Source: Bugula neritina
Taxonomy: Eukaryota > Animalia > Bryozoa
NCBI GenBank assembly: GCA_964035545.1
Contig: OZ037771.1
Coordinates: forward strand, 12,272,933-12,336,932
Reading direction: 5' to 3'
Length of the DNA stretch: 64,000 nt
Below the pieces are notes generated by a model that saw only the letters and a program-made list of their open reading frames with translations, was not told the DNA's origin and searched no databases. Each line of letters begins with the position of its first letter. The first letter of the stretch is position 1. The position numbers and the translations under genes were made by a program. Shown here one piece after another: positions 50,294-61,192 of this stretch.

Positions 50294-53200
50294 ATGAAAA
50301 TCTGGTTCAGGCATTCTGGACAGCCTCCTGTAAGCTGGTCAGATGTATGGAGACTTAATACCAAGGCATATGCTACTGCTGAGGTAAAACGTGAAATTGG
50401 GAGTTATCATATCACAGATCTCAAACTGGAGAGAACAATTCCAAATAACATTGGAGAGATTGCTGGTGAAGCCCTGTGTCTATGTGTTTCTAACCTGACT
50501 GACAGAGCAAGTCTACACAAGTGAGTGTCTATTATGATAGCTGTGTAAATGTTAAATTTGAGTTTAGTTGTGGTAATTATCACCCAAGATGTATCTAAGT
50601 CAATGCTGAAGTATATTATTACTCATGATGTAATCATGCACTATATAAAGCTATAGTAATATGTATAACATTGTACCTCTACCAGCTGAACGAGTTGTAG
50701 AAATTAGATAGTGCATATGGGAAACTGTCTGTAGTGTTACACATGCCATCATAAATTAAAACATGTTTTATGTAGTTGAATACAGAAGTAGCATATTATT
50801 ACAGTACATGTATACATGTAGGATTATACAGAAGGTTTATATTTGCAACACATAATATATATAAGCATATTATATGTAGCCATATACTTAAAAATAAAAG
50901 ATTTTCAGAATATTAAATACATGCTAATTTGTGTCAGATTAGCTATAACAAAGTAAACCATTTATTATTATGAATCATACTATATATTAGCATTACATTG
51001 TAGATGTAGCCCTTATCTACTAAACTTACAGGATGTCTATATACATATACATCTAATCACTCAACTCTACACAGGGCACCCATTACACCTACAACATGGC
51101 ATAATAGCATTTTTTGCTGCTTACCCTGTCTCAACAAAATTGTTTGCTACATAATTTACATTATAGTTGAATACAGAATATGTCATTATATATATGATAC
51201 AGTAGACTACATATATTACACACTTTATATTACAGTCTGCATCAGCTGACTCAGTTAGAGAAACTAAACATAGGATGGAATCCTCTCAACACAGTACCAG
51301 AAGTTGTGTCATCACTTACATCACTTAAAGAGTTGAATATGTGGAGATGTAAATTATCTACTCTACCTAAGAGGTTTGTTTGTCACAGTTTTTGTATTGT
51401 TTGAAACAATTAATACTTGAAATCATAAAATAGTTTCTTACCAAGTATAATTAGAGCATGTCATTAGGCCTATATAATTGAAAAATATGTGAAATGCAAT
51501 TCTTTTGAATTCTATATGAAATATGGTCTGTAATATTGTGAAAGTAACAAAATTCAAGGTACGCCATTATATATTCTTGTGTTATAAAAATATAATTAAT
51601 AGTAAGCAGTTGTATAGTTGATTAGTATTCACAAACTGAGTATATATAATAATTGAATACTTGTATGCTATTATAATAAATTGTTAACTTCTCATGCGAT
51701 CTGCATGTAATATGCTACAATAAGTTGCTTGGTAGTTAAATTGTGTATACTTTTACCTGGTTGAAAACAAAATGTGAATATAGTAAAAAATATTATAGTA
51801 ATACAGACTACATATATCATACACTTTATATTACAGTCTGTGCCAGCTGACTCAGTTAGAGAAACTAGACATACAAGGGAATCCTCTCAACACAGTACCA
51901 GAAGTTGTGTCATCACTCACATCACTCAAAGAGTTGAATATGTGGTACTGTGAATTATCTACTCTACCTGAGAGGTTTGTGTGTCATAGTTTTTGTATTG
52001 TTGAAACATTTAATACTTGAAATCATAAAATAGTTTCCTACCAAGTATTGTTAGGTTATGTCATTATATAATTGAAAAAATATGCGAAATGCAACTTTTT
52101 TAATTCTATATAAAACATGGTCTGTAATATTGTGAAAATAACATAGTTTTAAGGTATGCCATTATATATTCTTTTGCTATAAAATTTAGTTAATAGTAAG
52201 CAGTTGTATAGTTTGTTAGTATTCACACACTGAGTATATATAATAATTGAATACTTGTATGCTATTATAATAAACTGTTCACTTCTCATGCTCTGCATGT
52301 ACAACGCTACAATAAACTGCTTGGTAGTTGAGTTGTATATAGTTTTACCTGGTTGAAAACAAAATGTGAATACAGTATAAAGTTTTATGGTAATGCAGAC
52401 CACATATATATCATACACTTTATATTACAGTCTATGTCAGCTGACTCAGTTAGAGAAACTATACATGGGAGGGAATCCTCTCAACACAGTACCAGAAGTT
52501 GTGTCATCACTCACATCACTTAAAGAGTTGCATATGTGGAGCTGTAAACTATCTACTTTACCTGAGAGGTTTGTGTGTCACAGTTTTTGTATTGTTTCAA
52601 ACATTTATATATATATATATATATCCAGCTGAAAATTTAATTCTCAGTCACTATGCTAATAAACTAGAAATGACTGCTCACTATATATATTAAGTTTTTT
52701 TAAAATAAGAATATAATAATTACTATAATATAATGGCATACCCTAAAACTATGGGATTTCCATGATATTACAAACCATTACATGCATATAACTTTCAATT
52801 GATAATCTTATATTTTAAATTTATAATGATTTACAATGAGACCACTTAGTAATCCTACTTTGTAAGCATATACACCATTTTATTTATATATATATATATA
52901 TATAAATATATATATATATATATATATATATATATATATATATATATATATATATATATATATATATATATATATATATATATATATATATATATATGTA
53001 TATATATATATATAAATAAAATGGTGTATAGTTTACCACTAAAGAGAGCTCAATGCAGTGCAGAGTAAAGTAAATAAACATATAAACATAATAAACATAT
53101 AAACACACATATATATATATATATATATATATATATATATATATATGTATATATATATATATATATATATATATGTATATATATATATATATATATATAT

Positions 53201-59200: not shown

Positions 59201-61192
59201 TTGAGAACGTGTCTCTCATGTTGAAATCTCTCAAGTTTGATGTTGAGACACACACAGACCTGACAGCAGAGGTATAATATTGTTAGACTGAAAGCAATAG
59301 TATTCAATCAGTTTATCTGAACAAAACCTGACACTTGTTTCGTCAAACCTTAAAAATTGACACACTCACCTAACTACTTAGTTTATTAATGCTTCAAAAT
59401 AAGGGCCGTATAGGAAACCTAGAGCATGTTTATTGCTGGTCACAATTTTGCTTTTGCAAGTCTGGAAATTTTTATTTTATTCAGTTATCATGACTTTGTA
59501 CCAATTAATATACACCGTTATTTTCAAATTTGTAGGAAATGCTGTCTGCTGTGAGGTCTGAGATAAGAACAGAGAAAAGGAATGGCTTGGGTTGTCAAAT
59601 ACTGATTGTCATGAGTCATGGTAGTGAAGATAACTGTATCTATGGAACTGACCTTGAGAAGGTCAACCTTAAAGACTTCTATGATATGCTCGCTCCTTTG
59701 AGTTTAAAGCCTAAACCTACAGTTGTCATCCTAGAAGCTTGCAGCGAAGGTGAATATTGTTTTGTAATAAAAACGGACACACTTATTTGAGTGGTTACAC
59801 AGTAGTCAAAACTTCTTTGTTTCATTAAGATGATTTTTTACGGAAAAAAATGGAACATCTTCAGAAATGTGTCATATAAAATTGGTTAGGCAACTTTGTT
59901 ACGAAAATGGATGTTTTGATCTATCCTACTTCCCTGATAACTAAATTATTTGTGTTGCAGCAAACATTGAGGTGAACCCAGACAGATCTGGTCTTGCAGC
60001 ACCTCAAGAAGAAGAAACTGAAGCTGTCTCTTCTACACATTCTGAATCTGATGAGGATATTGTATATCCTGAAACACCCAGTGTAATAAGACCCATCAGA
60101 CCTGTCTTACCACCAGCACCTAGAATAGAAGAGCGATGGACCAGACTGGATGTTGATAATCTTCTTGTTCTAAAGAGTAACATCTGTTGTAAGTACAATA
60201 AGAGACAGCGATTGGCTATAAGTTTGTCTGAGCTGTTGTACCTTATATAAGATGTGGTTTACCAATTTTGTATTATTCCCGCATTTTGTAAGCGCTTTGA
60301 TTCTAATAACTTCTAAACTGAAAAAAGTAAAATGTGTTCCAGAACTTTGAGATTTTAAATATGATAGGCCTATGCCATAACTAAAACCTGTTAAACTTGG
60401 TCTGGCTATAAACCTAAATTTTGGTTGCACTTAATTGTATTTTAGCATCAAAGAGACATGCTGAGTATGGATCTCCTATGATTAGAGCTTTAGTATCTTC
60501 AATCTACAAACATGCCTGTCACCGGGATCTCTACACCATCTTTCAGCAGGTGGGTTTATAAATCACAAACTATTTCAACTTTAAAAGTTTAAAAATCACA
60601 ATACTTTTTTGGCTAGTTTAACTTTTATTTAAGAAATTAAAATATTATTTCTCATCATATCATTTTATTCATTTCTATGTTTGAACCCTTTTGTCTTTTA
60701 AAAGAAGATGTCTACTTTAGTTTTAGTAACAGAAGGTCCTTCCTAGTTTTCTCCAGTTTAACTGGTAGTTTTTGCTCTTACAATTCCTTTAGCATATATT
60801 GGCTCACTATATTGATTATAGTTTCTCTTCCTTGTCAATATGTTCTTGTAGTTTGCTAATAACTAGTGCCACTGTACTGCTATATGCCATCTGATATGAC
60901 TCCGGTAGACAATTCCCAAAGTGTTTGCTGTTCATATTTGTTAAAAGTAGGAAACAATATTCTAAAAGCTGAAATTTACATTTTATCACAGCTATAATAG
61001 TGAATTGATAAACAATCTTACTAGTCATTACTTACTCTACAGGTACAGACTAAACTAGTTAGGAAACTGTGTCCAGATGAAGATTCAGAGAGAAGCAGGA
61101 ATTTGATTGTAATCTGGAAGACTCTTCCTTTCCGTAAAAGACTTTACCTGTTTCCTGGCTTCGATGGGCTTAGTAGAGAAGAAAACTCCTAA
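50294..61192 (+). CDS. LRR-ROC-COR (ROCO/MFHAS1-like GTPase) fused to a C-terminal caspase (peptidase C14A) domain, ~1297 aa, 13 coding exons
   Basis: Phase-consistent GT-AG exons: 50294-50520, 51236-51373, 51837-51974, 52431-52568, 54041-54178, 55037-57042, 57320-57406, 57611-57765 (or 57771), 59101-59271, 59536-59749, 59961-60188, 60446-60549, 61043-61192 (3894 nt). LRRs LxxLxxLxIxxNxL; [21 protein letters not shown]; [21 protein letters not shown]; caspase [53 protein letters not shown]. Confidence 0.8.
51236..54178 (+). CDS. Array of four 138-nt symmetric (phase 2-2) cassette exons, each encoding two 23-aa LRRs
   Basis: Exons 51236-51373, 51837-51974, 52431-52568, 54041-54178; consensus [45 protein letters not shown]; flanking introns are co-duplicated (~600-bp unit). 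Confidence 0.93.
52885..53608. repeat. Three long (TA)n microsatellites surrounding a 112-bp palindrome (53230-53341)
   Basis: (TA)n at ~52885-53013, 53109-53232 and 53400-53608; palindrome centred on 53285/53286 with one mismatch. Confidence 0.95.
53623..53674 (+). pseudogene. Truncated LRR cassette pseudo-exon
   Basis: Intact acceptor tatattacag, then [17 protein letters not shown], then intron-like sequence; second LRR and donor are missing. Confidence 0.85.
55037..57042 (+). CDS. Large exon: 3 LRRs, LRR C-cap, ROC GTPase and COR domain
   Basis: Contains most of ORF 55107-57098 (to the donor). P-loop GKAMAGKTS at 55347-55373, G3 DMGG, G4 THKD; ROCO-type [10 protein letters not shown]...VRQY cap; acceptor tattag at 55036, donor gtatgt at 57043. 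Confidence 0.93.
59101..61192 (+). CDS. Caspase domain exons (p20, acidic linker, p10)
   Basis: Five in-phase exons. Catalytic His codon 59617-59619 (SHG); catalytic Cys codon 59740-59742 (EACSE instead of QACRG); stop TAA 61190-61192. Confidence 0.9.

Follow-up and report, generated by a model that had tools for sequence, protein, structure and literature searches.

A predicted LRR-Roc-COR-caspase protein of the bryozoan Bugula neritina, member of a large family of candidate sensor-proteases

Described systems and their relation to the bryozoan gene

The bacterial LRR-AP-GTPase-COR-effector proteins (Kaur et al. 2021, PMC8195603), counter-invader systems predicted from bacterial sequences only, combine fast-evolving LRRs and Roc-COR with a variable C-terminal effector that may be a caspase, with several paralogues per genome, and the LRR-Roc-COR-caspase architecture is listed for bacteria in the same work. 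For amphioxus, an 'LRRs-caspase' was noted, with the proposal that it leads from recognition to apoptosis by a shorter route (Zhang et al. 2008, PMC2575513); the amphioxus passages of that paper do not mention Roc-COR, and their gene identifiers were unmatched to the proteins found here. A caspase with a ROC prodomain was reported in Owenia (PMC11463336). The brown-algal ROCO candidate immune receptors (PMC11378527, PMC3341825) are expanded LRR-Roc-COR proteins with shuffling LRR exons and diversifying selection; they have one repeat per exon, and the abstract names no caspase. MFHAS1/MASL1-type ROCO proteins, LRRK1/2 and Chlorobium tepidum Roco consist of LRR, Roc with G1, G3 and G4 motifs, COR-A and COR-B in that order and end in a kinase or no enzyme.

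The gene analysed here, on the forward strand of a 64,000-nt stretch of Bugula neritina DNA (the window), encodes one predicted protein in which a rapidly varying recognition surface is joined to a GTP switch of the LRRK2 type and to a caspase. The preliminary description knew of no such architecture from model animals, a view that comparison did not support, the design having already been glimpsed for bacteria, amphioxus and a worm (Owenia). At least 12 amphioxus LRR-Roc-COR-caspase proteins were found (Branchiostoma species and hybrids; e.g. UniRef C3XQ16) with a domain order identical to that of the bryozoan protein; however, Roc-COR identity is about 22-27%, the amphioxus pentapeptide is the canonical QACRG and LRR-Roc-COR is also joined there to GT4, OTU or Death ends. 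Roc-COR-caspase proteins were also found in Lingula and Owenia, with Roc-COR directly upstream of the caspase as in the bryozoan but with no LRRs detected, a split Roc and, in Owenia, a Bcl-2 domain at the front. In comparison with the bacterial proteins, the bryozoan Roc-COR formed its own branch outside the bacterial rows sampled, and its caspase matched animal caspases. The order and fold of MFHAS1, LRRK and C. tepidum Roco are shared at only 12-15% identity to the solved Roco structures, whereas the bryozoan C-terminus is a caspase and the paralogues, at least 80 in number, have their LRRs on cassette exons; the RefSeq label of the Watersipora homologues is MFHAS1-like. Unlike the brown-algal receptors, the bryozoan gene has two repeats per exon and a caspase. 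The NLR inflammasome and APAF-1 apoptosome are comparable only as a works-like analogy (repeat sensor, nucleotide switch, proximity activation of a caspase), since the bryozoan protein is without STAND ATPase, CARD, DED or PYD, its predicted switch is a Ras-like GTPase and its caspase lies in the same chain.

In phylogenetic trees the bryozoan, amphioxus and Lingula/Owenia sequences fell on separate branches, and AU tests did not reject their grouping (p 0.06-0.44; for amphioxus, p 0.06 and 0.44). Since grouping was not rejected, no claim of independent origins or bacterial transfer is made, and a common origin of the bryozoan and amphioxus proteins is neither established nor rejected. Literature searches gave no paper on this bryozoan family and none that tests the LRR-Roc-COR-caspase design. 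ESM Atlas matches were all below 0.9, with no Roco-caspase cluster among them.

Gene model and the joint between COR and caspase

Thirteen exons totalling 3,894 nt chain into a single open reading frame for 1,297 aa and a stop codon, encoding in order an N-cap, 11 LRRs, Roc, COR, an acidic linker and a complete caspase; every intron is GT-AG and the exon phases connect with no stop in between. The features, at window positions and with their basis, are as follows.

50284..50289, + strand: in-frame splice acceptor ttacag just 5' of the proposed ATG at 50294 (sequence)
50294..50520, + strand: exon E1, family-specific N-terminal cap, 75 aa (63 genome matches; weak Watersipora N-cap match)
51236..51373, + strand: LRR cassette exon a, two 23-residue repeats (gene model, repeat comparison)
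51837..51974, + strand: LRR cassette exon b (exon and intron 88% identical to unit a)
52431..52568, + strand: LRR cassette exon c (gene model, repeat comparison)
53623..53720, + strand: degenerate LRR exon outside the model, acceptor and first 13 codons intact, remainder lost
54041..54178, + strand: LRR cassette exon d (gene model, repeat comparison)
55037..57042, + strand: large exon with three LRRs, Roc GTPase, COR-A and COR-B (Pfam, model and fold search, alignment)
55347..55370, + strand: Roc P-loop GKAMAGKT (sequence, motif census)
55509..55520, + strand: Roc G motif DMGG (sequence, motif census)
55716..55727, + strand: Roc G motif THKD (sequence, motif census)
57320..57406, + strand: linker exon 1, phase 1-1 (RNA joints 57042>57320 and 57406>57611)
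57592..57597, + strand: branch-like tctaac motif 5' of linker exon 2 (sequence)
57611..57765, + strand: linker exon 2, Asp/Glu-rich, phase 1-0 (gene model, RNA)
59101..59271, + strand: caspase exon 1, large-subunit start, S1-pocket Arg kept (Peptidase_C14 E 4e-9; RNA joint to 59536)
59536..59749, + strand: caspase exon 2, catalytic His and Cys (Pfam, alignment)
59614..59622, + strand: SHG with catalytic His codon 59617-59619 (sequence)
59734..59748, + strand: pentapeptide EACSE with catalytic Cys codon 59740-59742 (sequence)
59961..60188, + strand: caspase exon 3, acidic inter-subunit linker and small-subunit start (RNA loose ends fit both joints)
60446..60549, + strand: caspase exon 4, small-subunit core, second S1-pocket Arg (RNA joint to 61043)
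61043..61192, + strand: caspase exon 5 and stop codon (gene model, alignment)

Recomputation from the sequence reproduced every coordinate named in the preliminary description, including the tctaac motif before linker exon 2, and bore out its chain in which the ROC-COR exon, ending at 57042 in phase 1, joins through two linker exons to five caspase exons in one frame. The ORF of ~1297 aa given there held as a frame; because an in-frame acceptor precedes the ATG and homologues are longer at the N-terminus by 15-75 residues, 1,297 aa is probably a minimum and the 5' end probably incomplete. The acceptor suggests an upstream exon outside the model, and a tblastn search of the window found no upstream coding exon. 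The spliced model was searched exon by exon, with annotated Watersipora and Bugula proteins as a stand-in for the full-length chain. An assembly artefact was ruled out by the same exon set on an independent metagenome contig (L035), and a pseudogene by frameshift was ruled out by the intact frame. A search of metagenomes for related loci found none.

That LRR-Roc-COR and caspase form one gene and one chain, as had been proposed, agrees with the frame and phases, with splice phases conserved among paralogues, and with fused models annotated in Watersipora RefSeq and Bugula GenBank. Two neighbouring, co-duplicating genes (LRR-Roc-COR and a prodomain-less caspase), or a dominant short isoform ending in the intron after linker exon 2, would accord with the joint 57765>59101 not being among the RNA matches listed, with low depth at 57920-58319 in one RNA run and an AATAAA at 58257, with a read-through past linker exon 2 that stops after 9 codons, with a Met at codon 4 of caspase exon 1, and with some Watersipora models being split. 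This arrangement is nevertheless highly improbable: RNA depth at 58320-58919 was none; the phase-matched donor and acceptor at the linker-caspase joint are kept in all paralogues checked, the phase-0 GT donor of linker exon 2 occurring at 28 of the 28 loci where the exon was found; the intron between linker exon 2 and caspase exon 1 is as short as 220-269 nt in 11 paralogues; and annotated proteins run through the COR-caspase joint in at least nine Watersipora cases and one Bugula case.

RNA contigs showed most introns spliced, but these contigs derive from paralogues or other alleles, and the private bases of the present copy are absent from them (e.g. every contig differs at 55353 and 59143). 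The non-repeat DNA 5' of the ATG measures only about 95 nt, the 15 kb upstream of the gene being nested repeats that include a fresh Pao/BEL element; the nearest paralogues (88-92% identical) are clustered on contig C6, while the present copy is solitary on C7. Together with the missing upstream exon, these observations could mean that the family is functional and the C7 copy is a recent duplicate, silent after loss of its promoter or first exon among transposons. We consider this quite unlikely, as none of the 13 exons is interrupted and all have canonical splice sites, a first exon may be situated farther upstream than the repeats, and the RNA runs come from other individuals and yield contigs that drop rare variants.

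Recognition surface, GTPase and caspase

The four LRR cassette exons are each 138 nt, of phase 2-2, and encode two 23-residue repeats. Over nine exons, codons for exposed LRR positions carried 23 amino-acid-changing and 2 silent differences against 15 and 12 elsewhere (Fisher p 0.004), and exposed beta-strand positions changed at about twice the silent rate (p 0.02); for the four exons of the present gene alone the p value was 0.07, below significance. Amino-acid change is thus concentrated, in this comparison of nine exons, at exposed beta-strand positions, as under diversifying selection, and the exposed LRR face is hypervariable, with far more variation than the rest.

Of the profiles for LRR, Roc, COR and C14 proposed earlier as a check, Roc (32.2 bits, cut-off 27, its GTPase motif set intact) and Peptidase_C14 exceeded the Pfam cut-off, while COR-A and COR-B matched weakly, under cut-off. 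The AlphaFold model of the large exon, built from a 110-sequence alignment, had a pLDDT of 93 (35 with single-sequence input), and its fold matched LRRK1 (E 5e-24) and the Chlorobium Roco LRR-Roc-COR (E 6e-22). Most of its length aligned to the Roc-COR of LRRK1 and C. tepidum, and it aligned as well to the isolated COR 3dpt. Sequence and model therefore assign the exon to the ROCO proteins, with a predicted Roc domain bearing P-loop, DxxG and G4 and a COR directly after it; the COR-B end carries a Cys/His cluster conserved in the alignment. Ratios of 0.24-0.29 for Roc and COR indicate purifying selection. The nucleotide-binding domain is Roc and not the NACHT or NB-ARC of NLR/STAND receptors. 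A genome-wide Pfam Roc scan was swamped by Rab-type matches.

Peptidase_C14 exceeded the Pfam cut-off on caspase exons 1 and 2, exons 4 and 5 aligned to the small subunit of full-length homologues covering the whole profile, and the best PDB matches of a Watersipora homologue were CED-3 and caspase-9/8/3. The predicted C14 fold thus has large and small subunits in one chain, with His-Gly and Cys. The caspase had been described as having no CARD or DED prodomain; with matches accepted up to E 1, neither E1 nor the linker exons gave a CARD, DED or Death match, and the death-fold prodomain of initiator caspases appears to be absent. The pentapeptide departs from QACxG: EACSE has Glu for both the conserved Gln and Gly. 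Paralogues have EACSG, QACSG, QACSE, ETCSG, EVCSG or HACSG. By alignment, both arginines of the Asp-binding S1 pocket are kept, Glu stands in place of Gln, and the loop that precedes the second Arg is 2 residues short; in all, two caspase loops are short by 3 and 2 residues. The domain is best filed, from its sequence, as an atypical caspase-family domain, and since EACSE replaces QACxG and two loops have short deletions, the protease activity and specificity of the present copy are uncertain.

Both substitutions and both shortened loops, with EACSE in only 3 of 20 exon ends recovered by pattern search, would suit a real fusion in which the present copy and the EACSE subgroup are catalytically weak or dead and act in the manner of cFLIP, as a scaffold or decoy or by regulating active paralogues. 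This is rather unlikely, given that the His, the Cys and both S1 arginines are kept, the Cys in every paralogue read, that Glu at the first pentapeptide position is common to at least 18 copies, that the caspase exons are under purifying selection (pN/pS 0.37, p 0.0003), and that EACSE recurs in the genome of a second sample, L035. A private lesion at the first position was ruled out by the copies sharing Glu.

The family and the proposed mechanism

At least 80 such genes were counted in the Bugula genome, supplying the paralogue number called for in the preliminary description; each of the 80 Roc-COR exons located is followed within 15 kb by caspase exons in the same orientation, as read by eye from coordinate tables. 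We favour, with a probability of roughly 0.6, a single-chain intracellular sensor-protease for defence or cell death, member of a large bryozoan family with fast turnover whose proteins would work as defence or non-self receptors. This reading accords with a single chain in which no death-fold prodomain was found and in which a conserved GTPase core is paired with a hypervariable LRR face. In these respects the sensor-GTPase-protease first proposed stands, though its architecture is not new. Precedents are the bacterial LRR-AP-GTPase-COR-effector systems (PMC8195603) and the LRR exon shuffling of brown-algal ROCO proteins (PMC11378527).

In the favoured mechanism the LRRs would bind a foreign or damage ligand, which would shift the Roc-COR nucleotide cycle toward a COR-COR dimer or oligomer; COR dimerisation would bring two caspase domains together without a CARD/DED adaptor, the acidic linkers would be cut, and the protease would trigger cell death or inflammatory processing. 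The gating direction proposed earlier for GTP is doubtful, since the best-studied Roco is mainly a monomer with GTP and a dimer without nucleotide (PMC6337361); if the bryozoan protein behaves like Chlorobium Roco, its active dimer may be GDP-bound or empty, and GTP would hold the monomer off. If the mechanism is true, animals would have a path from ligand to caspase that needs no adaptor and uses a GTPase in place of a STAND ATPase. It is the family as a whole that is of interest; the contribution of the present copy is an unusual active site and a 5' end that is probably incomplete.

Bryozoans undergo cyclical polypide degeneration, which would fit an active protease switch serving development, tissue turnover or control of colony self/non-self fusion and not microbe sensing, as would transcription of the family in four of four RNA runs. 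Variable LRRs suit allorecognition as well as pathogen sensing, and bryozoan allo-incompatibility is mentioned in PMC8195603. Such a role is unlikely, however, in that a set of at least 80 copies that duplicate in clusters, include pseudogenes and diversify their LRRs exon by exon is more typical of pathogen-driven receptor families, and the corresponding bacterial and algal proteins are read as systems against invaders.

The genome gave almost no NACHT or NB-ARC matches in an exon-by-exon search, by which split domains may be missed. These variable receptors, at least 80 of them in a colonial animal where very few NLR domains are detectable, are a candidate means by which bryozoans might achieve immunity, control of symbionts or self-recognition of the colony. 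It is possible, if somewhat doubtful, that Roco-caspases (some 80-130 receptors) took over the role of NLRs in bryozoans, with diversity in LRR exons and caspase active sites and an adaptor-free GTPase dimer switch; shuffled LRR exons would then provide for ligands, and active sites altered as in EACSE would provide for new substrates. If so, they would represent an animal immune or allorecognition receptor class in which a protease reads out the Roc-COR cycle directly. Broken paralogues (4 of 30) resemble those of birth-and-death immune families, a likeness that supports the sensor-protease reading.

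Exon structure and domain content

Exon-by-exon rebuilding of the gene at 50294-61192 on the forward strand gave 13 exons with GT-AG introns throughout, phases that chained without a stop, and an exon total of 3,894 nt, equal to 1,297 codons plus the stop. The single 1,297-aa frame with LRR, ROC, COR and caspase domains proposed in the preliminary description was thereby reproduced in exon sum, phases and codon count, and its estimate of about 11 LRRs agreed with the 11 counted, eight from four 138-nt phase-2 exons (LRR cassettes) and three from the large ROC-COR exon (55037-57042). 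Domain searches of the spliced model were conducted one exon at a time. Roc matched above the Pfam cut-off, COR-A and COR-B matched weakly, and Peptidase_C14 exceeded the cut-off on caspase exons 1 and 2. No CARD, DED or Death domain was found in the first exon or the two linker exons, in keeping with the earlier remark that no CARD/DED prodomain is visible. Since the COR match was weak, the large exon was folded using a 110-sequence alignment; the predicted model had a pLDDT of 93 with LRRK1 and Chlorobium tepidum LRR-Roc-COR as the top structural matches. By predicted fold and motifs the product is a ROCO protein, and by sequence its protease is an atypical caspase-family domain; it is not an NLR.

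The P-loop (55347-55370) reads GKAMAGKT, with the key G, K and T/S residues unaltered, versus GNTMAGKT in 27 of 28 other paralogues read and GNTMAGKS in one. Where COR ends (~56870-57041), the 110 aligned sequences share an almost invariant Cys-x-His-Cys ... Cys cluster, possibly a zinc site.

Linkage of Roc-COR to caspase and expression of the family

The ROC-COR exon query returned 68 scored matches among 148 candidates in the genome and other queries added 12. Caspase exons, as read by eye from coordinate tables, were located downstream on the same strand at all 80 located Roc-COR exons (77 within 10 kb and three at 10-15 kb), the 216-Mb genome containing ~130 such caspase exons; the pairing is far beyond chance, though copies that arose by duplication do not count as independent. 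Following COR, a phase-1 donor was present at 30/30 paralogue loci examined, as was the phase-0 donor after linker 2 at all 28 where that exon was found; the 11 examined loci long enough to include caspase exon 1 have a phase-0 acceptor 220-269 nt beyond the linker 2 donor. Roc-COR runs into caspase in at least nine annotated proteins of the bryozoan Watersipora and one of Bugula, and metagenome contigs L036 and L037 have the same domain order at 25-39% identity. A 404-residue match at 96% was found between the genome and the B. neritina GenBank protein KAF6024315.1, and Watersipora subatra supplied the closest named homologues of the large exon; the host is accordingly B. neritina or a very near relative.

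Four public sequencing runs, taken as RNA on an automated guess, yielded contigs that covered the exons of the gene and left most introns empty. GT-AG joints were found at 57042>57320, 57406>57611, 59271>59536 and 60549>61043, and loose contig ends were compatible with 59749>59961 and 60188>60446; the joint 57765>59101 was absent among the RNA matches listed. Low RNA depth in one run at 57920-58319, ahead of an AATAAA at 58257, could represent unspliced RNA or a short isoform without the caspase. Two separate genes in place of one fused gene are judged highly improbable. Because the long RNA pieces were mostly 90-96% identical to the gene and its private bases at 55353 and 59143 differed in every RNA contig, the RNA supports splicing of the family and not expression of this copy.

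Of 30 paralogues, 4 were broken by stops or by a split in the Roc-COR exon. The gene is the lone copy on contig C7, the nearest paralogues (88-92%) being clustered on C6, and by its sequence it is a genuine gene, intact, and belongs to a large bryozoan Roco-caspase family. The ATG is preceded by an in-frame acceptor, and Watersipora and Bugula homologues have 15-75 additional N-terminal residues; two of these open with Met-Gly-x-x-x-Ser, a possible signal for myristoylation. No earlier exon was found in the window, where ~15 kb of nested repeats lies upstream and the high-copy repeats leave ~95 nt of non-repeat DNA ahead of the ATG.

Repeats upstream of the gene
35000-37669: high-copy repeat, at least 2.7 kb, 97-99%
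37665-40235 and 48856-49635: dispersed ~3-kb repeat without a long ORF, split by the Pao element
40236-48855 (+): Pao/BEL LTR retrotransposon, identical 745-nt LTRs at 40236-40980 and 48111-48855
49647-50196: high-copy repeat, ~550 nt, 87%

The Pao/BEL element is a very recent insertion; its target duplication is 5 nt long (TGTAT), and its ORF at 41695-48063 (2,122 aa) is intact. The dispersed repeat occurs 40 or more times at 97-99% identity, with a second copy in the window, inverted, at 17935-21112. The true gene may extend beyond the present model, or this copy may be silent; silence is judged quite unlikely. Elsewhere in the window were minus-strand exons of a TMTC-type protein O-mannosyltransferase (~2936-12330, DUF1736 and TPR matches), plus-strand fragments like a decayed non-LTR retroelement (25500-28000), and two copies of another repeat, 89% identical, at the ends (446-1293 and 63446-64000).

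Relatives and origin

The preliminary description regarded the architecture as unfamiliar from model animals. A search of 1.84 billion representative proteins located the LRR-Roc-COR-caspase layout also in amphioxus, and Roc-COR followed by caspase in both Lingula and Owenia. A further search gave at least 12 Branchiostoma proteins with the full layout, related to proteins that carry GT4, OTU or Death domains at the C-terminus. Caspase is moreover among the 24 kinds of C-terminal effector of bacterial LRR-AP-GTPase-COR proteins (PMC8195603). An amphioxus 'LRRs-caspase' was noted in PMC2575513, the searched passages of which do not mention Roc, and an Owenia ROC-caspase in PMC11463336, where bryozoans are unmentioned. 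The literature search, with most subscription journals outside it, returned nothing on a bryozoan Roco-caspase family or a functional test of one.

In trees, the bryozoan Roc-COR and caspase sequences each formed their own branch. Because Bugula and Watersipora sequences were intermixed within these branches, the family is placed by sequence before the split of the two. Common ancestry with the amphioxus, Lingula/Owenia or bacterial sequences was not rejected by AU tests, and therefore neither independent origins nor transfer from bacteria is claimed for the bryozoan fusion.

Further caspase or Roco fusions were present in database proteins P0229 (Owenia) and P0209, P0225 and P0253-P0296 (Branchiostoma), including Bcl-2-Roc-COR-caspase, pannexin-like-LRR-caspase, ZU5-caspase with weak AAA matches, and amphioxus LRR-Roc-COR with GT4, OTU or Death ends.

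Active site, selection and proposed role

The caspase retains the catalytic His-Gly and Cys and, by alignment, both S1 arginines; compared with Watersipora homologues and CED-3, one loop is shorter by 3 residues and another by 2. The pentapeptide of this copy reads EACSE, a sequence seen in three genome copies and one independent metagenome contig. Its first-position Glu is common to at least 18 copies, and other paralogues have EACSG, QACSG, QACSE, ETCSG, EVCSG or HACSG, the Cys always being kept. Caspase exons 1, 2, 4 and 5 gave a pN/pS of 0.37 versus the closest homologue (p 0.0003), and Roc and COR gave ratios of 0.24-0.29. A weak or dead pseudo-protease is unlikely; the caspase appears to be diversifying and probably active, with specificity possibly shifted.

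Selection on the LRRs was evaluated with nine cassette exons, four from this gene, where the cassettes were duplicated together with introns (88-90% identity).

53623: decayed LRR cassette

Exposed strand positions required a minimum of 23 amino-acid-changing versus 2 silent changes, compared with 15 versus 12 elsewhere (Fisher p 0.004), and changed at approximately twice the silent rate (p 0.02); the four cassettes of this gene alone gave p 0.07. LRR exon shuffling is described for brown-algal ROCOs in PMC11378527.

Roco proteins dimerize via the C-terminal half of COR (PMC4104024), and forced dimerization activates caspase domains, as cited in PMC2575513. Ligand on the LRRs would push the Roc-COR cycle toward a dimer that would bring two caspase domains together; the acidic linkers would then be cut, leading to death or inflammatory processing. 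With GTP the Chlorobium Roco is for the most part a monomer, and it forms dimers when nucleotide is absent (PMC6337361); the GTP gating of COR dimerization proposed in the preliminary description may be reversed in direction. The family is read as a defence receptor with a probability of about 0.6, a developmental or allorecognition role being rather unlikely. A six-frame genome search, which can miss intron-split domains, found one weak partial NACHT match and no NB-ARC, a hint only that these domains are scarce.

Several small contigs of the assembly (G000), among them C66, C101, C110 and C160, had Rab-like matches spanning many TAA/TAG codons, which suggests that they are ciliate contigs.
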